A DNA stretch of 64,000 nucleotides, taken from contig OZ059899.1 in assembly GCA_964057225.1 (NCBI GenBank), positions 248,001 through 312,000 of the forward strand. The letters run 5' to 3'. Both the position numbers and the translations under genes were made by a program. Position 1 is the first letter of the stretch. Each line of letters begins with the position of its first letter. Source of the stretch: Auanema rhodensis (lineage: Eukaryota > Animalia > Nematoda). Below the pieces are notes generated by a model. That model did not search any database. It saw nothing but the letters and a program-made list of their open reading frames with translations, and was not told the DNA's origin. Below are positions 49,089 through 64,000 of the stretch, one piece after another.

Positions 49089-51904
49089 CAATATCAATAA
49101 AAATTTGTTTTTAGACTAATATGGACATGGGGAATCTAATGTTGAAAACCGCATCTCTTTATCTTTCACGTGAAGCGAGTTACATACCAAGTGCACATCA
49201 CGTGTACATTTAATTAGCATAAATTAAAGTTCACGTAAATTTCAAAGTCATGGTTACCATGAACCAATATCAATAAAAATTTGTTTTTTGACTAATATGG
49301 ACATGGGGAATCTAATTTTGAAAACCGCATCTCTTTATCTTTCACGTGAAGCGAGTTACATACCAAGTGCACATCACGTGTACATTTAATTAGCATAAAT
49401 TAAAGTTCACGTAAATTTCAAAGTCATGGTTACCATGCACCAATATCAATAAAAATTTGTTTTTAGACTAATATGGACATGAGGAATCTAATTTTGAAAA
49501 CCGCATCTCTTTATCTTTCACGTGAAGCGAGTTACATACCAAGTGCACATCACGTGTACATTTAATTAGCATAAATTAAAGTTCACGTAAATTTCAAAGT
49601 CATGGTTACCATGCACCAATATCAATAAAAATTTGTTTTTAGACTAATATGGACATGAGGAATCTAATTTTGAAAACCGCATCTCTTTATCTTTCACGTG
49701 AAGCGAGTTACATACCAAGTGCACATCACGTGTACATTTAATTAGCATAAATTAAAGTTCACGTAAATTTCAAAGTCATGGTTACCATGCACCAATATCA
49801 ATAAAAATTTGTTTTTAGACTAATATGGACATGGGGAATCTAATTTTGAAAACCGCATCTCTTTATCTTTCACGTGAAGCGAGTTACATACCAAGTGCAC
49901 ATCACGTGTACATTTAATTAGCATAAATTAAAGTTCACGTAAATTTCAAAGTCATGGTTACCATGAACCAATATCAATAAAAATTTGTTTTTTGACTAAT
50001 ATGGACATGGGGAATCTAATTTTGAAAACCGCATCTCTTTATCTTTCACGTGAAGCGAGTTACATACCAAGTGCACATCACGTGTACATTTAATTAGCAT
50101 AAATTAAAGTTCACGTAAATTTCAAAGTCATGGTTACCATGCACCAATATCAATAAAAATTTGTTTTTAGACTAATATGGACATGAGGAATCTAATTTTG
50201 AAAACCGCATCTCTTTATCTTTCACGTGAAGCGAGTTACATACCAAGTGCACATCACGTGTACATTTAATTAGCATAAATTAAAGTTCACGTAAATTTCA
50301 AAGTCATGGTTACCATGAACCAATATCAATAAAAATTTGTTTTTTGACTAATATGGACATGGGGAATCTAATTTTGAAAACCTCATCTCTTTATCTTTCA
50401 CGTGAAGCGAGTTACATACCAAGTGCACATCACGTGTACATTTAATTAGCATAAATTAAAGTTCACGTAAATTTCAAAGTCATGGTTACCATGCACCAAT
50501 ATCAATAAAAATTTGTTTTTAGACTAATATGGACATGAGGAATCTAATTTTGAAAACCGCATCTCTTTATCTTTCACGTGAAGCGAGTTACATACCAAGT
50601 GCACATCACGTGTACATTTAATTAGCATAAATTAAAGTTCACGTAAATTTCAAAGTCATGGTTACCATGCACCAATATCAATAAAAATTTGTTTTTAGAC
50701 TAATATGGACATGAGGAATCTAATTTTGAAAACCGCATCTCTTTATCTTTCACGTGAAGCGAGTTACATACCAAGTGCACATCACGTGTACATTTAATTA
50801 GCATAAATTAAAGTTCACGTAAATTTCAAAGTCATGGTTACTATGCACCAATATCAATAAAAATTTGTTTTTAGACTAATATGGACATGAGGAATCTAAT
50901 TTTGAAAACCGCATCTCTTTATCTTTCACGTGCAGCGAGTTACATACCAAGTGCACATCACGTGTACATTTAATTAGCATAAATTAAAGTTCACGTAAAT
51001 TTCAAAGTCATGGTTACCATGCACCAATATCAATAAAAATTTGTTTTTAGACTAATATGGACATGGGGAATCTAATTTTGAAAACCGCATCTCTTTATAT
51101 TTCACGTGAAGCGAGTTACATACCAAGTGCACATCACGTGTACATTTAATTAGCATAAATTAAAGTTCACGTAAATTTCAAAGTCATGGTTACCACGAAC
51201 CAATATCAATAAAAATTTGTTTTTAGACTAATATGGACATGGGGAATCTAATTTTGAAAACCGCATCTCTTTATCTTTCACGTGAAGCGAGTTACATACC
51301 AAGTGCACATCACGTGTACATTTAATTAGCATAAATTAAAGTTCACGTAAATTTCAAAGTCATGGTTACCATGCACCAATATCAATAAAAATTTGTTTTT
51401 AGACTAATATGGACATGGGGAATCTAATTTTGAAAACCGCATCTCTTTATCTTCCACGTGAAGCGAGTTACATACCAAGTGCACATCACGTGTACATTTA
51501 ATTAGCATAAATTAAAGTTCACGTAAATTTCAAAGTCATGGTTACCATGCACCAATATCAATAAAAATTTGTTTTTAGACTAATATGGACATGGGGAATC
51601 TAATTTTGAAAACCGCATCTCTTTATCTTCCACGTGAAGCGAGTTACATACCAAGTGCACATCACGTGTACATTTAATTAGCATAAATTAAAGTTCACGT
51701 AAATTTCAAAGTCATGGTTACCATGCACCAATATCAAAAAAAATCTGTTTTTAGACTAATATGGACATGGGGAATCTAATTTTGAAAACCGCATCTCTTT
51801 ATCTTTCACGTGAAGCGAGTTACATACCAAGTGCACATCACGTGTACATTTAATTAGCATAAATTAAAGTTCACGTAAATTTCAAAGTCATGGTTACCAT
51901 GCAC

Positions 51905-52960
51905 CAATATCAATAAAAATTTGTTTTTAGACTAATATGGACATGGGGAATCTAATTTTGAAAACCGCATCTCTTTATCTTTCACGTGAAGCGAGTTACA
52001 TATCAAGTGCACATCACGTGTACATTTAATTAGCATAAATTAAAGTTCACGTAAATTTCAAAGTCATGGTTACCATTAACCAATATCAATAAAAATTTGT
52101 TTTTAGACTAATATGGACATGGGGAATCTAATTTTGAAAACCGCATCTCTTTATCTTTCACGTGAAGCGAGTTACATACCAAGTGCACATCACGTGTACA
52201 TTTAATTAGCATAAATTAAAGTTCACGTAAATTTCAAAGTCATGGTTACCATGCACCAATATCAATAAAAATTTGTTTTTAGACTAATATGGACATGGGC
52301 AATCTAATTTTGAAAACCGCATCTCTTTATCTTTCAAGTGAAGCGAGTTACATACCAAGTGCACATCACGTGTACATTTAATTAGCATAAATTAAAGTTC
52401 ACGTAAATTTCAAAGTCATGGTTACCATGCACCAATATCAATAAAAATTTGTTTTTAGACTAATATGGACATGGGGAATCTAATTTTGAAAACCGCATCT
52501 CTTTATCTTTCACGTGAAGCGAGTTACATATCAAGTGCACATCACGTGTACATTTAATTAGCATAAATTAAAGTTCACGTAAATTTCAAAGTCATGGTTA
52601 CCATTAACCAATATCAATAAAAATTTGTTTTTAGACTAATATGGACATGGGGAATCTAATTTTGAAAACCGCATCTCTTTATCTTTCACGTGAAGCGAGT
52701 TACATACCAAGTGCACATCACGTGTACATTTAATTAGCATAAATTAAAGTTCACGTAAATTTCAAAGTCATGGTTACCATGCACCAATATCAATAAAAAT
52801 TTGTTTTTAGACTAATATGGACATGGGCAATCTAATTTTGAAAACCGCATCTCTTTATCTTTCAAGTGAAGCGAGTTACATACCAAGTGCACATCACGTG
52901 TACATTTAATTAGCATAAATTAAAGTTCACGTAAATTTCAAAGTCATGGTTACCATGCAC
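51905..52960 (+). repeat. 3-monomer (528 bp) tandem duplication abutting the left junction
   Basis: TATCAAG+CCATTAAC / consensus / GGGC+TTCAAGTG at 51905-52432 repeats at 52433-52960. Confidence 0.92.
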
Positions 52961-52985
52961 CAATATCAAAAATTTACGCGAACTT
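52961..52985. other. Left inversion junction (orientation A to inverted)
   Basis: ...CCATGCAC CAATATCAA|AAATTTACGCGAACTTT...: forward monomer positions 1-9 are joined to the reverse complement from position 154 with no inserted bases. The exact break is ambiguous within the A5 run. Confidence 0.97.
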
Positions 52986-55900
52986 TAATTTATGCTAATT
53001 AAATGTACACGTGATGTGCACTTGGTATGTAACTCGTTTCACGTGAAAGATAAAGAGATGCGGTTTTCAAAATTAGATTCCCCATGTCCATATTAGTCTA
53101 AAAACAAATTTTTATTGATATTGGTTAATGGTAACCATGACTTTGAAATTTACGTGAACTTTAATTTATGCTAATTAAATGTACACGTGATGTGCACTTG
53201 ATATGTAACTCGCTTCACGTGAAAGATAAAGAGATGCGGTTTTCAAAATTAGATTCCCCATGTCCATATTAGTCTAAAAACAAATTTTTATTGATATTGG
53301 TGCATGGTAACCATGACTTTGAAATTTACGTGAACTTTAATTTATGCTAATTAAATGTACACGTGATGTGCACTTGGTATGTAACTCGCTTCACGTGAAA
53401 GATAAAGAGATGCGGTTTTCAAAATTAGATTCCCCATGTCCATATTAGTCTAAAAACAGATTTTTATTGATATTGGTGCATGGTAACCATGACTTTGAAA
53501 TTTACGTGAACTTTAATTTATGCTAATTAAATGTACACGTGATGTGCACTTGGTATGTAACTCGCTTCACGTGAAAGATAAAGAGATGCGGTTCTCAAAA
53601 TTAGATTCCCCATGTCCATATTAGTCTAAAAACAAATTTTTATTGATATTGGTGCATGGTAACCATGACTTTGAAATTTACGTGAACTTTAATTTATGCT
53701 AATTAAATGTACACGTGATGTGCACTTGGTATGTAACTCGCTTCACGTGAAAGATAAAGAGATGCGGTTTTCAAAATTAGATTCCTCATGTACATATTAG
53801 TCTAAAAACAAATTTTTATTGATATTGGTGCATGGTAACCATGACTTTGAAATTTACGTGAACTTTAATTTATGCTAATTAAATGTACACGTGATGTGCA
53901 CTTGGTATGTAACTCGCTTCACGTGAAAGATAAAGAGATGCGGTTTTCAAAGTTAGATTCCCCATGTCCATATTAGTCTAAAAACAAATTTTTATTGATA
54001 TTGGTGCATGGTAACCATGACTTTGAAATTTACGTGAACTTTAATTTATGCTAATTAAATGTACACGTGATGTGCACTTGGTATGTAACTCGCTTCACTT
54101 GAAAGATAAAGAGATGCGGTTTTCAAAATTAGATTGCTCATGTCCATATTAGTCTAAAAACAAATTTTTATTGATATTGGTGCATGGTAACCATGACTTT
54201 GAAATTTACGTGAACTTTAATTTATGCTAATTAAATGTACACGTGATGTGCACTTGGTATGTAACTCGCTTCACGTGAAATATAAAGAGATGCGGTTTTC
54301 AAAATTAGATTCCCCATGTCCATATTAGTCTAAAAACAAATTTTTATTGATATTGGTGCATGGTAACCATGACTTTGAAATTTACGTGAACTTTAATTTA
54401 TGCTAATTAAATGTACACGTGATGTGCACTTGGTATGTAACTCGCTTCACGTGAAAGATAAAGAGATGCGGTTTTCAAAATTAGATTCCTCATGTACATA
54501 TTAGTCTAAAAACAAATTTTTATTGATATTGGTGCATGGTAACCATGACTTTGAAATTTACGTGAACTTTAATTTATGCTAATTAAATGTACACGTGATG
54601 TGCACTTGGTATGTAACTCGCTTCACGTGAAAGATAAAGAGATGCGGTTTTCAAAATTAGATTCCCCATGTCCATATTAGTCTAAAAACAAATTTTTATT
54701 GATATTGGTGCATGGTAACCATGACTTTGAAATTTACGTGAACTTTAATTTATGCTAATTAAATGTACACGTGATGTGCACTTGGTATGTAACTCGCTTC
54801 ACTTGAAAGATAAAGAGATGCGGTTTTCAAAATTAGATTGCCCATGTCCATATTAGTCTAAAAACAAATTTTTATTGATATTGGTGCATGGTAACCATGA
54901 CTTTGAAATTTACGTGAACTTTAATTTATGCTAATTAAATGTACACGTGATGTGCACTTGGTATGTAACTCGCTTCACGTGAAAGATAAAGAGATGCGGT
55001 TTTCAAAATTAGATTCCCCATGTCCATATTAGTCTAAAAACAAATTTTTATTGATATTGGTTAATGGTAACCATGACTTTGAAATTTACGTGAACTTTAA
55101 TTTATGCTAATTAAATGTACACGTGATGTGCACTTGATATGTAACTCGCTTCACGTGAAAGATAAAGAGATGCGGTTTTCAAAATTAGATTCCCCATGTC
55201 CATATTAGTCTAAAAACAAATTTTTATTGATATTGGTGCATGGTAACCATGACTTTGAAATTTACGTGAACTTTAATTTATGCTAATTAAATGTACACGT
55301 GATGTGCACTTGGTATGTAACTCGCTTCACGTGAAAGATAAAGAGATGCGGTTTTCAAAATTAGATTCCCCATGTCCATATTAGTCTAAAAACAGATTTT
55401 TTTTGATATTGGTGCATGGTAACCATGACTTTGAAATTTACGTGAACTTTAATTTATGCTAATTAAATGTACACGTGATGTGCACTTGGTATGTAACTCG
55501 CTTCACGTGGAAGATAAAGAGATGCGGTTTTCAAAATTAGATTCCCCATGTCCATATTAGTCTAAAAACAAATTTTTATTGATATTGGTGCATGGTAACC
55601 ATGACTTTGAAATTTACGTGAACTTTAATTTATGCTAATTAAATGTACACGTGATGTGCACTTGGTATGTAACTCGCTTCACGTGGAAGATAAAGAGATG
55701 CGGTTTTCAAAATTAGATTCCCCATGTCCATATTAGTCTAAAAACAAATTTTTATTGATATTGGTGCATGGTAACCATGACTTTGAAATTTACGTGAACT
55801 TTAATTTATGCTAATTAAATGTACACGTGATGTGCACTTGGTATGTAACTCGCTTCACGTGAAAGATAAAGAGATGCGGTTTTCAAAATTAGATTCCCCA

Positions 55901-58900
55901 TGTCCATATTAGTCTAAAAACAAATTTTTATTGATATTGGTTCGTGGTAACCATGACTTTGAAATTTACGTGAACTTTAATTTATGCTAATTAAATGTAC
56001 ACGTGATGTGCACTTGGTATGTAACTCGCTTCACGTGAAATATAAAGAGATGCGGTTTTCAAAATTAGATTCCCCATGTCCATATTAGTCTAAAAACAAA
56101 TTTTTATTGATATTGGTGCATGGTAACCATGACTTTGAAATTTACGTGAACTTTAATTTATGCTAATTAAATGTACACGTGATGTGCACTTGGTATGTAA
56201 CTCGCTGCACGTGAAAGATAAAGAGATGCGGTTTTCAAAATTAGATTCCTCATGTCCATATTAGTCTAAAAACAAATTTTTATTGATATTGGTGCATAGT
56301 AACCATGACTTTGAAATTTACGTGAACTTCAATTTATGCTAATTAAATGTACACGTGATGTGCACTTGGTATGTAACTCGCTTCACGTGAAAGATAAAGA
56401 GATGCGGTTTTCAAAATTAGATTCCTCATGTCCATATTAGTCTAAAAACAAATTTTTATTGATATTGGTGCATGGTAACCATGACTTTGAAATTTACGTG
56501 AACTTTAATTTATGCTAATTAAATGTACACGTGATGTGCACTTGGTATGTAACTCGCTTCACGTGAAAGATAAAGAGATGCGGTTTTCAAAATTAGATTC
56601 CTCATGTCCATATTAGTCTAAAAACAAATTTTTATTGATATTGGTGCATGGTAACCATGACTTTGAAATTTACGTGAACTTTAATTTATGCTAATTAAAT
56701 GTACACGTGATGTGCACTTGGTATGTAACTCGCTTCACGTGAAAGATAAAGAGATGCGGTTTTCAAAATTAGATTCCCCATGTCCATATTAGTCTAAAAA
56801 CAAATTTTTATTGATATTGGTTCATGGTAACCATGACTTTGAAATTTACGTGAACTTTAATTTATGCTAATTAAATGTACACGTGATGTGCACTTGGTAT
56901 GTAACTCGCTTCACGTGAAAGATAAAGAGATGCGGTTTTCAAAATTAGATTCCCCATGTCCATATTAGTCTAAAAACAAATTTTTATTGATATTGGTTCA
57001 TGGTAACCATGACTTTGAAATTTACGTGAACTTTAATTTATGCTAATTAAATGTACACGTGATGTGCACTTGGATATAACTCGCTTCACGTGAAAGATAA
57101 AGAGATGCGGTTTTCAAAATTAGATTCCCCATGTCCATATTAGTCTAAAAACAAATTTTTATTGATATTGGTTCATGGTAACCATGACTTTGAAATTTAC
57201 GTGAACTTTAATTTATGCTAATTAAATGTACACGTGATGTGCACTTGGTATGTAACTCGCTTCACGTGAAAGATAAAGAGATGCGGTTTTCAAAATTAGA
57301 TTCCCCATGTCCATATTAGTCTAAAAACAAATTTTTATTGATATTGGTTCATGGTAACCATGACTTTGAAATTTACGTGAACTTTAATTTATGCTAATTA
57401 AATGTACACGTGATGTGCACTTGGTATGTAACTCGCTTCACGTGAAATATAAAGAGATGCGGTTTTCAAAATTAGATTCCCCATGTCCATATTAGTCTAA
57501 AAACAGATTTTTATTGATATTGGTGCATGGTAACCATGACTTTGAAATTTACGTGAACTTTAATTTATGCTAATTAAATGTACACGTGATGTGCACTTGG
57601 TATGTAACTCGCTTCACGTGAAAGATAAAGAGATGCGGTTTTCAAAATTAGATTCCCCATGTCCATATTAGTCTAAAAACAAATTTTTATTGATATTGGT
57701 TAATGGTAACCATGACTTTGAAATTTACGTGAACTTTAATTTATGCTAATTAAATGTACACGTGATGTGCACTTGATATGTAACTCGCTTCACGTGAAAG
57801 ATAAAGAGATGCGGTTTTCAAAATTAGATTCCCCATGTCCATATTAGTCTAAAAACAAATTTTTATTGATATTGGTGCATGGTAACCATGACTTTGAAAT
57901 TTACGTGAACTTTAATTTATGCTAATTAAATGTACACGTGATGTGCACTTGGTATGTAACTCGCTTCACGTGAAAGATAAAGAGATGCGGTTTTCAAAAT
58001 TAGATTCCCCATGTCCATATTAGTCTAAAAACAGATTTTTATTGATATTGGTGCATGGTAACCATGACTTTGAAATTTACGTGAACTTTAATTTATGCTA
58101 ATTAAATGTACACGTGATGTGCACTTGGTATGTAACTCGCTTCACGTGAAAGATAAAGAGATGCGGTTTTCAAAATTAGATTCCCCATGTCCATATTGGT
58201 CTAAAAACAAATTTTTATTGATATTGGTGCATGGTAACCATGACTTTGAAATTTACGTGAACTTTAATTTATGCTAATTAAATGTACACGTGATGTGCAC
58301 TTGGTATGTAACTCGTTTCACGTGAAAGATAAAGAGATGCGGTTTTCAAAATTAGATTCCCCATGTCCATATTAGTCTAAAAACAAATTATTATTGATAT
58401 TGGTTAATGGTAACCATGACTTTGAAATTTACGTGAACTTTAATTTATGCTAATTAAATGTACACGTGATGTGCACTTGATATGTAACTCGCTTCACGTG
58501 AAAGATAAAGAGATGCGGTTTTCAAAATTAGATTCCCCATGTCCATATTAGTCTAAAAACAAATTTTTATTGATATTGGTGCATGGTAACCATGACTTTG
58601 AAATTTACGTGAACTTTAATTTATGCTAATTAAATGTACACGTGATGTGCACTTGGTATGTAACTCGCTTCACGTGAAAGATAAAGAGATGCGGTTTTCA
58701 AAATTAGATTCCCCATGTCCATATTAGTCTAAAAACAGATTTTTATTGATATTGGTGCATGGTAACCATGACTTTGAAATTTACGTGAACTTTAATTTAT
58801 GCTAATTAAATGTACACGTGATGTGCACTTGGTATGTAACTCGCTTCACGTGAAAGATAAAGAGATGCGGTTCTCAAAATTAGATTCCCCATGTCCATAT

Positions 58901-61900
58901 TAGTCTAAAAACAAATTTTTATTGATATTGGTGCATGGTAACCATGACTTTGAAATTTACGTGAACTTTAATTTATGCTAATTAAATGTACACGTGATGT
59001 GCACTTGGTATGTAACTCGCTTCACGTGAAAGATAAAGAGATGCGGTTTTCAAAATTAGATTCCTCATGTACATATTAGTCTAAAAACAAATTTTTATTG
59101 ATATTGGTGCATGGTAACCATGACTTTGAAATTTACGTGAACTTTAATTTATGCTAATTAAATGTACACGTGATGTGCACTTGGTATGTAACTCGCTTCA
59201 CGTGAAAGATAAAGAGATGCGGTTTTCAAAGTTAGATTCCCCATGTCCATATTAGTCTAAAAACAAATTTTTATTGATATTGGTGCATGGTAACCATGAC
59301 TTTGAAATTTACGTGAACTTTAATTTATGCTAATTAAATGTACACGTGATGTGCACTTGGTATGTAACTCGCTTCACTTGAAAGATAAAGAGATGCGGTT
59401 TTCAAAATTAGATTGCCCATGTCCATATTAGTCTAAAAACAAATTTTTATTGATATTGGTGCATGGTAACCATGACTTTGAAATTTACGTGAACTTTAAT
59501 TTATGCTAATTAAATGTACACGTGATGTGCACTTGGTATGTAACTCGCTTCACGTGAAATATAAAGAGATGCGGTTTTCAAAATTAGATTCCCCATGTCC
59601 ATATTAGTCTAAAAACAAATTTTTATTGATATTGGTGCATGGTAACCATGACTTTGAAATTTACGTGAACTTTAATTTATGCTAATTAAATGTACACGTG
59701 ATGTGCACTTGGTATGTAACTCGCTTCACGTGAAAGATAAAGAGATGCGGTTTTCAAAATTAGATTCCTCATGTACATATTAGTCTAAAAACAAATTTTT
59801 ATTGATATTGGTGCATGGTAACCATGACTTTGAAATTTACGTGAACTTTAATTTATGCTAATTAAATGTACACGTGATGTGCACTTGGTATGTAACTCGC
59901 TTCACGTGAAAGATAAAGAGATGCGGTTTTCAAAATTAGATTCCCCATGTCCATATTAGTCTAAAAACAAATTTTTATTGATATTGGTGCATGGTAACCA
60001 TGACTTTGAAATTTACGTGAACTTTAATTTATGCTAATTAAATGTACACGTGATGTGCACTTGGTATGTAACTCGCTTCACTTGAAAGATAAAGAGATGC
60101 GGTTTTCAAAATTAGATTGCCCATGTCCATATTAGTCTAAAAACAAATTTTTATTGATATTGGTGCATGGTAACCATGACTTTGAAATTTACGTGAACTT
60201 TAATTTATGCTAATTAAATGTACACGTGATGTGCACTTGGTATGTAACTCGCTTCACGTGAAAGATAAAGAGATGCGGTTTTCAAAATTAGATTCCCCAT
60301 GTCCATATTAGTCTAAAAACAAATTTTTATTGATATTGGTTAATGGTAACCATGACTTTGAAATTTACGTGAACTTTAATTTATGCTAATTAAATGTACA
60401 CGTGATGTGCACTTGATATGTAACTCGCTTCACGTGAAAGATAAAGAGATGCGGTTTTCAAAATTAGATTCCCCATGTCCATATTAGTCTAAAAACAAAT
60501 TTTTATTGATATTGGTGCATGGTAACCATGACTTTGAAATTTACGTGAACTTTAATTTATGCTAATTAAATGTACACGTGATGTGCACTTGGTATGTAAC
60601 TCGCTTCACGTGAAAGATAAAGAGATGCGGTTTTCAAAATTAGATTCCCCATGTCCATATTAGTCTAAAAACAGATTTTTTTTGATATTGGTGCATGGTA
60701 ACCATGACTTTGAAATTTACGTGAACTTTAATTTATGCTAATTAAATGTACACGTGATGTGCACTTGGTATGTAACTCGCTTCACGTGGAAGATAAAGAG
60801 ATGTGGTTTTCAAAATTAGATTCCCCATGTCCATATTAGTCTAAAAACAAATTTTTATTGATATTGGTGCATGGTAACCATGACTTTGAAATTTACGTGA
60901 ACTTTAATTTATGCTAATTAAATGTACACGTGATGTGCACTTGGTATGTAACTCGCTTCACGTGGAAGATAAAGAGATGCGGTTTTCAAAATTAGATTCC
61001 CCATGTCCATATTAGTCTAAAAACAAATTTTTATTGATATTGGTGCATGGTAACCATGACTTTGAAATTTACGTGAACTTTAATTTATGCTAATTAAATG
61101 TACACGTGATGTGCACTTGGTATGTAACTCGCTTCACGTGAAAGATAAAGAGATGCGGTTTTCAAAATTAGATTCCCCATGTCCATATTAGTCTAAAAAC
61201 AAATTTTTATTGATATTGGTTCGTGGTAACCATGACTTTGAAATTTACGTGAACTTTAATTTATGCTAATTAAATGTACACGTGATGTGCACTTGGTATG
61301 TAACTCGCTTCACGTGAAATATAAAGAGATGCGGTTTTTAAAATTAGATTCCCCATGTCCATATTAGTCTAAAAACAAATTTTTATTGATATTGGTGCAT
61401 GGTAACCATGACTTTGAAATTTACGTGAACTTTAATTTATGCTAATTAAATGTACACGTGATGTGCACTTGGTATGTAACTCGCTGCACGTGAAAGATAA
61501 AGAGATGCGGTTTTCAAAATTAGATTCCTCATGTCCATATTAGTCTAAAAACAAATTTTTATTGATATTGGTGCATAGTAACCATGACTTTGAAATTTAC
61601 GTGAACTTTAATTTATGCTAATTAAATGTACACGTGATGTGCACTTGGTATGTAACTCGCTTCACGTGAAAGATAAAGAGATGCGGTTTTCAAAATTAGA
61701 TTCCTCATGTCCATATTAGTCTAAAAACAAATTTTTATTGATATTGGTGCATGGTAACCATGACTTTGAAATTTACGTGAACTTTAATTTATGCTAATTA
61801 AATGTACACGTGATGTGCACTTGGTATGTAACTCGCTTCACGTGAAAGATAAAGAGATGCGGTTTTCAAAATTAGATTCCTCATGTCCATATTAGTCTAA

Positions 61901-63350
61901 AAACAAATTTTTATTGATATTGGTGCATGGTAACCATGACTTTGAAATTTACGTGAACTTTAATTTATGCTAATTAAATGTACACGTGATGTGCACTTGG
62001 TATGTAACTCGCTTCACGTGAAAGATAAAGAGATGCGGTTTTCAAAATTAGATTCCCCATGTCCATATTAGTCTAAAAACAAATTTTTATTGATATTGGT
62101 TCATGGTAACCATGACTTTGAAATTTACGTGAACTTTAATTTATGCTAATTAAATGTACACGTGATGTGCACTTGGTATGTAACTCGCTTCACGTGAAAG
62201 ATAAAGAGATGCGGTTTTCAAAATTAGATTCCCCATGTCCATATTAGTCTAAAAACAAATTTTTATTGATATTGGTTCATGGTAACCATGACTTTGAAAT
62301 TTACGTGAACTTTAATTTATGCTAATTAAATGTACACGTGATGTGCACTTGGATATAACTCGCTTCACGTGAAAGATAAAGAGATGCGGTTTTCAAAATT
62401 AGATTCCCCATGTCCATATTAGTCTAAAAACAAATTTTTATTGATATTGGTTCATGGTAACCATGACTTTGAAATTTACGTGAACTTTAATTTATGCTAA
62501 TTAAATGTACACGTGATGTGCACTTGGTATGTAACTCGCTTCACGTGAAATATAAAGAGATGCGGTTTTCAAAATTAGATTCCCCATGTCCATATTAGTC
62601 TAAAAACAGATTTTTATTGATATTGGTGCATGGTAACCATGACTTTGAAATTTACGTGAACTTTAATTTATGCTAATTAAATGTACACGTGATGTGCACT
62701 TGGTATGTAACTCGCTTCACGTGAAAGATAAAGAGATGCGGTTTTCAAAATTAGATTCCCCATGTCCATATTAGTCTAAAAACAAATTTTTATTGATATT
62801 GGTTAATGGTAACCATGACTTTGAAATTTACGTGAACTTTAATTTATGCTAATTAAATGTACACGTGATGTGCACTTGATATGTAACTCGCTTCACGTGA
62901 AAGATAAAGAGATGCGGTTTTCAAAATTAGATTCCCCATGTCCATATTAGTCTAAAAACAAATTTTTATTGATATTGGTGCATGGTAACCATGACTTTGA
63001 AATTTACGTGAACTTTAATTTATGCTAATTAAATGTACACGTGATGTGCACTTGGTATGTAACTCGCTTCACGTGAAAGATAAAGAGATGCGGTTTTCAA
63101 AATTAGATTCCCCATGTCCATATTAGTCTAAAAACAGATTTTTATTGATATTGGTGCATGGTAACCATGACTTTGAAATTTACGTGAACTTTAATTTATG
63201 CTAATTAAATGTACACGTGATGTGCACTTGGTATGTAACTCGCTTCACGTGAAAGATAAAGAGATGCGGTTTTCAAAATTAGATTCCCCATGTCCATATT
63301 AGTCTAAAAACAAATTTTTATTGATATTGGTGCATGGTAACCATGACTTT
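52970..63350 (-). repeat. 30-monomer (5279 bp) tandem duplication inside the inverted block
   Basis: CTCGTTTC at about 53037/58316, GTGCATAG at 56298/61577, GGATATAAC deletion at about 57074/62353 (offset 5279 = 30x176-1). After about 62450 the offset drops to 5103, so the second copy lacks one monomer. Confidence 0.92.
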
Positions 63351-63925
63351 GAAATTTACGTGAACTTTAATTTATGCTAATTAAATGTACACGTGATGTG
63401 CACTTGGTATATAACTCGCTTCACGTGAAAGATAAAGAGATGCGGTTTTCAAAATTAGATTCCCCATGTCCATATTAGTCTAAAAACAAATTTTTATTGA
63501 TATTGGTGCATGGTAACCATGACTTTGAAATTTACGTGAACTTTAATTTATGCTAATTAAATGTACACGTGATGTGCACTTGGTATGTAACTCGCTTCAC
63601 GTGAAAGATAAAGAGATGCGGTTTTCAAAATTAGATTCCCCATGTCCATATTAGTCTAAAAACAAATTTTTATTGATATTGGTTAATGGTAACCATGACT
63701 TTGAAATTTACGTGAACTTTAATTTATGCTAATTAAATGTACACGTGATGTGCACTTGATATGTAACTCGCTTCACGTGAAAGATAAAGAGATGCGGTTT
63801 TCAAAATTAGATTCCCCATGTCCATATTAGTCTAAAAACAAATTTTTATTGATATTGGTGCATGGTAACCATGACTTTGAAATTTACGTGAACTTTAATT
63901 TATGCTAATTAAATGTACACGTGAT
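52970..63925 (-). repeat. Same 176-bp satellite in inverted orientation (10,956-bp inverted block)
   Basis: From 52970 the + strand reads AAATTTACGCGAACTTTAATTTATGCTAATTAAATGTACACGTGATGTGCAC..., the reverse complement of the consensus (one substitution) starting at monomer position 154. It ends with ...GTACACGTGAT (monomer position 109) at 63925. Length = 62x176 + 46 - 2, with 1-bp deletions near 57074 and 62353. Confidence 0.99.
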
Positions 63926-63935
63926 CAAAGTCATG
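63915..63935. other. Right inversion junction (inverted to orientation A)
   Basis: ...AAATGTACACGTGA(T)CAAAGTCATGG...: the T at 63925 can belong to either side (1-bp overlap). No insertion. Confidence 0.95.
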
Positions 63936-64000
63936 GTTACCATGCACCAATATCAATAAAAATCTGTTTTTAGACTAATATGGACATGGGGAATCTAATT
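63926..64000 (+). repeat. 176-bp satellite resumes in orientation A
   Basis: CAAAGTCATGGTTACCATGCACCAATATCAATAAAAATCTGTTTTTAGACTAATATGGACATGGGGAATCTAATT matches consensus positions 155-176 then 1-53, with one variant (AATCTG). Only 75 bp are visible. Confidence 0.95.

Follow-up and report, generated by a model that had tools for sequence, protein, structure and literature searches.

An 11-kb reversed block in a homogeneous 176-bp satellite array of Auanema rhodense is probably a single two-break inversion

Reversed blocks have been described in human satellite DNA: the T2T-CHM13 assembly contains a 1.7-Mb inversion in the active alpha-satellite higher-order repeat array of chromosome 1, together with smaller ones, and such blocks occur more often in diverged arrays than in homogeneous ones, where they are rare (bioRxiv 10.1101/2021.07.12.452052). 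In the nematode Auanema rhodense, tandem repeats with units of 167-504 bp form terminal multi-megabase blocks, which are restricted to the germline and eliminated from somatic cells (bioRxiv 10.64898/2026.08.27.747507). Here we analysed a stretch of 64,000 nucleotides of this genome (C7:248001-312000, hereafter the window), made of a 176-bp satellite in which one block of ~11 kb is reversed. Like the human satellite inversions, this block lies within an otherwise unidirectional homogeneous array and has no transposon at its ends; unlike them, it belongs to a germline-restricted, non-centromeric satellite of a nematode from a holocentric lineage, and it measures only 11 kb. It goes beyond the human cases in that both junctions are resolved to the base and that monomer phase and the paralogy of repeat units inform the reconstruction. 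We consider it probable that the block arose in place as a single balanced inversion, by two breaks repaired by end joining. The event is a well-resolved further instance of an ordinary, known rearrangement and shows no new mechanism or element; it gives a base-resolved example of a homogeneous tandem array gaining a reversed block, in which monomer phase, the order of higher-order units and genome-unique variants supply internal evidence for a balanced and recent event. The locus thereby offers a case study for rearrangement in the multi-megabase satellites that are discarded from A. rhodense somatic cells, as well as a check locus for assembly quality.

Positions in the window are counted from its first letter, and the numbering of contig C7 (OZ059899.1) was used for sequence beyond it. 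Monomer phase and orientation were surveyed over 264 kb (C7:148001-412000, i.e. the window plus 100 kb on each side), while genome-wide searches covered 180,911,798 bp in 112 contigs. The assembly, of the inbred strain APS4, was made from PacBio HiFi reads with hifiasm and purge_dups (bioRxiv 10.64898/2026.08.27.747507). A consensus monomer was built from 270 in-phase copies of the satellite; all 1,471 monomers of the 264-kb region were then aligned to this consensus and typed by their variants. All statements on register and exactness, including the 99-bp figure given below, were established modulo 176 only. Mean divergence from the consensus was 1.1% per position among the 270 copies, and the 1,471 monomers differed from it by 1.86 positions each.

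The original prediction, drawn from the letters of the window, was that a block of ~11 kb is reversed between 52970 and 63925, with ends at monomer positions 154 and 109/155. This was borne out by a base-by-base comparison with the consensus, by Tandem Repeats Finder, which reported one 176-bp array at 1-52969 and another at 52970-63925, each with 98% matching and their consensus units reverse-complementary to one another, and by the GC and AT skews, both of which flip sign at 52969/52970. Phase tracking identified the block as the sole reversed stretch within at least 264 kb: the head-to-tail array is forward across C7:148-412 kb, the only exceptions being the block and one 4.7-kb retroelement insertion. 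On the left, the forward array (1-52969, plus strand) ends in a partial monomer, positions 1-9, at 52961-52969, and on C7 the same orientation persists over at least another 100 kb to the left. On the right, it resumes at monomer position 155 (63926-64000, plus strand) and remains forward for 44 kb up to the retroelement, and then to at least C7:412000.

The block itself (52970-63925, minus strand) comprises 10,956 bp, i.e. 62.25 monomers; its first base is the complement of position 154 and its last that of position 109. At its left end (junction 1, 52969/52970), forward position 9 meets the complement of position 154, without filler and with a 0-bp overlap. At its right end (junction 2, 63925/63926), the complement of position 109 is joined to forward position 155 with a 1-bp overlap, the T at 63925 that ends the block also fitting forward position 154. 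Each junction word (a 23-mer for junction 1 and a 22-mer for junction 2) has a single match in the genome, even with 2 mismatches allowed. Neither junction carries transposon, spacer, filler or other non-satellite bases, as had been predicted; satellite lies on both sides, and the nearest mobile element is 44 kb off. A transposon-mediated rearrangement was rejected on the grounds that both junctions consist of satellite bases only. Non-allelic homologous recombination was also rejected, because the junctions join unrelated phases (9/154 and 109/155) and the array was unidirectional beforehand.

Reverse-complementing the block in silico, a check proposed with the original prediction, restored perfect register at junction 2 (154|155, with no spacing irregularity) and left a single offset at junction 1, where a spacing of 77 bp, equivalent to a loss of 99 bp, is the sole irregular one in the region. 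The register shift across the block, +75, corresponds to these 77 bp minus two 1-bp deletions within the block. The claim that one end is exact, with no loss or gain, thus holds for the register after flipping, but only modulo 176. Similarly, the spacing behind the predicted 99-bp loss (or 77-bp gain) at the other end was confirmed, again modulo 176, while the paralogous units considered below suggest a loss of ~627 bp. For two unrelated junctions, the chance of an exact register is ~2/176 (1.1%) when the 1-bp ambiguity is allowed for, in agreement with the low prior of 1-2 in 176 given beforehand, and it amounts to ~3% if any of three end pairings would have been remarked on.

A recurrent break site could in principle produce such a match. 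Degenerate-pattern scans of the genome were run for forward arrays that resume at position 155 after non-consensus sequence, with positions 101 and 41 as controls; they returned 2 other discontinuities resuming at 155, vs 0 at position 101 and ~3 at position 41. Resumption at 155 being as rare as at the control positions, a hotspot at 154|155 was rejected, and it does not account for the phase match. Arrays stopping at 154 before non-consensus sequence were commoner, with 88 genome matches in ~12 classes. Most of these are not strand switches but point variants or locally amplified deletions of ~40 bp that lie between the two direct copies of AAATTT (positions 13-18 and 149-154). Many monomers on C1 (282-325 kb), C80, C83, C85 and C88 skip from 154 to 18/19 through this ~40-bp AAATTT-AAATTT deletion, which occurs there in local clusters.

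The same AAATTT word complicates junction 1. On the plain reading, position 9 and the complement of position 154 abut bluntly. An alternative reading takes the junction forward to position 18, with a 6-bp overlap at the AAATTT palindrome and a 3-bp deletion, and the turn fits this short palindrome only if the deletion is assumed. A forward monomer carrying the 3-bp deletion had no match anywhere in the genome, so that the palindrome reading needs a deletion made during joining. A private substitution (monomer position 145, A>G, at 52979, minus strand) lies 9 bp inside the junction and 4 bp beyond the AAATTT; it is present in 1 of the 1,471 monomers, and the paralogue of this site, 5,279 bp away, has the consensus base. 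Because the block retains positions 149-154 and the flank begins at 155, the register argument holds under both readings of junction 1.

A second strand switch in the same satellite, at C4:4825093 (L023, C4:4823593-4826618, with the junction near L023:1512-1519), provided a comparison. There, the array runs forward to position 18 and continues at the complement of position 148 via a shared AAATTT, and its arms, set around a 46-bp centre, mirror each other over 1,322 bp except for 1 mismatch. This is a true fold-back at AAATTT palindromes and served as positive control for mirror arms. It is like junction 1 in satellite and in the plus-to-minus join beside AAATTT: junction 1 equals the C4-type join minus 3 bp, plus the private substitution at 52979, so that the two differ by only a 3-bp gap and one substitution. 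The block is nevertheless unlike the C4 fold-back, as it has no mirror arms, is single-copy and reverts in orientation after 11 kb in matching register. No mirror arm was found at junction 1 in an ungapped scan, the first kb inside the block differing from the adjoining flank by no fewer than 11 mismatches; at junction 2, the one copy that comes close to perfect identity (1 mismatch) is 2.4 kb off and does not abut the junction. With monomer types not mirrored and ungapped mirror scans negative, a fold-back at either junction of the block was rejected.

Two independent strand switches, e.g. an AAATTT fold-back at junction 1 and an unrelated later event at junction 2, would give the same geometry if the register matched by chance and the mirror arms had been erased by turnover. 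The C4 fold-back, with its join of the same type, and the recurrent ~40-bp deletions, which also use AAATTT, speak for such a history. It is nonetheless quite improbable in our view, since the register match would be a coincidence of ~1-3%, position 155 is no hotspot, the 3-bp deletion variant that it needs was found nowhere else, and the unit copies across both junctions are 99.9-100% identical, which leaves little time to erase mirror arms. A related proposal, that breakage or strand switching in this satellite favours the AAATTT palindromes (positions 13-18 and 149-154), we regard as doubtful; if it were true, one sequence-directed mechanism, and not random breaks, would lie behind junction 1, the 154|155 break at the exact edge of AAATTT, and the C4 fold-back.

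The scan for fold-back junction words also matched a monomer on C84 (L024, C84:277978-281003), a forward monomer that has GTGTGAAG instead of GTTTTTAG after AAATTT. As a strand switch, this monomer was rejected: it is merely a 2-mismatch match to the junction word.

We further gained insight into the origin of the block from its rare variants. BLAST against 253 kb of flanks gave 98.6% identity at every register, which is background, and no near-identical forward counterpart of the block was found there; a recent inverted duplication of neighbouring sequence was rejected on this basis. In the typing of the 1,471 monomers, the rare types of the block reappeared only within ~15 kb on either side. 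Marker Y (T10A + T17C) has 3 copies genome-wide, one forward in the left flank (51729-51754, plus strand) and two reversed in the block (55386-55411 and 60665-60690, minus strand). Marker e (C95T + deletion of position 98) likewise has 3 copies genome-wide, two reversed in the block (57059-57088 and 62338-62367, minus strand) and one forward in the right flank (C7:316078, plus strand). These markers and the locally restricted types, being common to block and flanks, indicate that the block is of local origin. Searches with markers Y and e over the 181 Mb revealed no extra forward copies, and thus no forward donor of the block is assembled anywhere.

Restoring the block brings the markers into the order Y e Y e Y e, and the restored monomer types form three tandem units of ~30 monomers, which together span the block and reach into the flanks on both sides; the regular order is that expected of three tandem units. 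Within the block, two copies of the higher-order unit (52970-57271 and 58249-62550, both minus strand) are offset by 5,279 bp and have 6 mismatches over 4,302 positions. The paralogue of the unit in the left flank (50849-52432, plus strand) is a perfect 1,584-bp inverted repeat of 54708-56291 (minus strand) in the block, and the last 1,056 bp of the block (62870-63925, minus strand) are a 1-mismatch inverted copy of C7:314344-315399, which starts 2,418 bp past junction 2. Unit copies that face each other in opposite orientation across the two junctions differ by 0-0.14%.

These inverted copies can also be viewed as traces of copying. Under serial template switching, by fork stalling and template switching or microhomology-mediated break-induced replication (FoSTeS/MMBIR-like), the block would be an inverted insertion or duplication whose donor has since been lost or lay on a different haplotype: the nascent strand would leave at position 9, copy ~11 kb of the opposite strand and return 145 bp (modulo 176) downstream in the same monomer. 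Such a route is favoured by the 1.6 kb of the block that repeat left-flank sequence perfectly in inverted form and by its last 1.06 kb, which do so for the right flank with 1 mismatch, by the similarity of junction 1 to an AAATTT microhomology join, and by the flanks, which make a coherent single unit without the block. It lacks a forward donor, however: no additional forward copy of marker Y or e occurs in 181 Mb, ~8 of the 11 kb of the block are without a near-identical forward match, and within the 1,471 monomers of the 264-kb region variant 87A, which was not searched genome-wide, is found in the block alone. Moreover, the 154|155 register match is not predicted under this model and becomes a coincidence of ~1%, and for microhomology-driven switching the overlaps, 0 and 1 bp, are short. 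We consider template switching unlikely.

The in-place inversion that we favour accommodates the single-copy block, the unique markers, the lack of mirror arms and the absence of a hotspot at 155, all of which support the original proposal of one two-break, end-joined event. Two double-strand breaks would have occurred ~11-12 kb apart, and the four ends would have been rejoined crosswise by end joining, inverting a piece of ~62 monomers from a locally amplified part of the array. The second break would lie between positions 154 and 155, with both ends kept to the base, whereas the first would have lost 99 + n x 176 bp. The size of n may be read from the unit structure: in the two paralogous units, h f i c and then Z come after a type 'a' monomer, while the unit that spans junction 1 has, after 'a', 9 bp, the junction, 67 bp and then Z. 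If this unit resembled its paralogues, n would be 3 and the loss 99 + 3 x 176 = 627 bp, a suggestive figure that is limited by the other single-monomer indels by which unit copies differ.

Concerning the order of events, local amplification of the ~30-monomer unit would have preceded the inversion, since tandem duplication cannot yield copies in opposite orientation. The near-identity of the copies across the junctions further argues that the inversion is evolutionarily young, with probably at most ~0.1-0.2% divergence since amplification.

Several points weigh against this reconstruction. Both junctions come from the hifiasm assembly alone, and exactness is known only modulo 176, so that a loss of whole monomers is compatible with the data. 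When the block is removed, the flanks also read plausibly as one unit (a | c h f X i c. Z, where the paralogues have a h f i c Z), and the unit pattern by itself is therefore compatible with an inserted inverted copy. The near-identity of unit copies 2 and 3 stops within one monomer of the restored junction 2, a mild coincidence. Finally, junction 1 falls 3 bp short of the AAATTT join of a fold-back, which hints at a microhomology or replicative route at that end.

We infer breaks with end joining, rather than replicative switching, as the origin of the block, and the joining pathway likewise. In the C. elegans germline, error-prone break repair proceeds through end joining mediated by polymerase theta (TMEJ) with single-nucleotide homology (PMC4032859, PMC4490562), and end joining with 0-1 nt of homology is a plausible pathway here. 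As in end-joined two-break inversions, breakpoint homology is absent, the overlap is 0-1 nt, little sequence is missing at one of the breakpoints, and there is no filler. In terms of the TMEJ footprint, the values are 1 nt at junction 2, 0 nt at junction 1 and a loss of 99 bp modulo 176, the chance expectation for at least 1 nt being 0.47. Junction 2 would thus fit polymerase-theta joining and junction 1 only under its palindrome reading, a comparison that is barely informative. The locus departs from TMEJ, which typically uses at least 1 nt, by the 0 nt of junction 1, by a loss that may be 627 bp vs the 50-200 bp class of TMEJ, and by having no templated insertion where the TMEJ footprint occasionally includes templated inserts.

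An assembly artefact was also considered, in which chimeric or misplaced HiFi reads would have given a false inverted segment of about read length. In length, the 11-kb block is indeed close to a HiFi read, the array is 98-99% uniform and contains exact local repeats that reach 4.7 kb, and the assembly was produced with hifiasm and purge_dups. A reversed satellite read cannot overlap forward reads, however, so that reads bearing the junctions must be present at both ends; two random chimeras would not agree in register; and genome-unique variants are common to the block and both flanks, with no forward version assembled. We accordingly rate an artefact as very unlikely, the least probable of the alternatives discussed.

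Beyond the block, the survey of the 264-kb region gave additional information on the array. No array-wide higher-order repeat was detected in it, the mean distance between monomers increasing only from 3.15 to 3.44 with lag. Local near-perfect duplications are many across C7:148-412 kb, at lags of 8-104 monomers and with runs of up to 27 identical monomers. Register shifts of larger size are rare in the forward array and consist of one 37-bp deletion and of an 11-bp deletion in three nearby monomers (C7:193266-193296 and C7:352528-354273).

The non-satellite insertion located 44 kb to the right of the block (C7:356196-360907, L007:4196-8907) is 4.7 kb long and encodes a 770-aa open reading frame with a reverse-transcriptase domain (RVT_1, E 8.6e-34); it has no long terminal repeats. 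Because the RVT_1 domain is present and long terminal repeats are absent, this insertion is probably a non-LTR (long terminal repeat) retroelement.

Elsewhere in the genome, arrays of the nematode telomere hexamer occur. On contig C1, the same 176-bp satellite is plus-oriented near the start and minus-oriented near the end, and satellite arrays at the two ends of a chromosome thus appear to be mirror-oriented.

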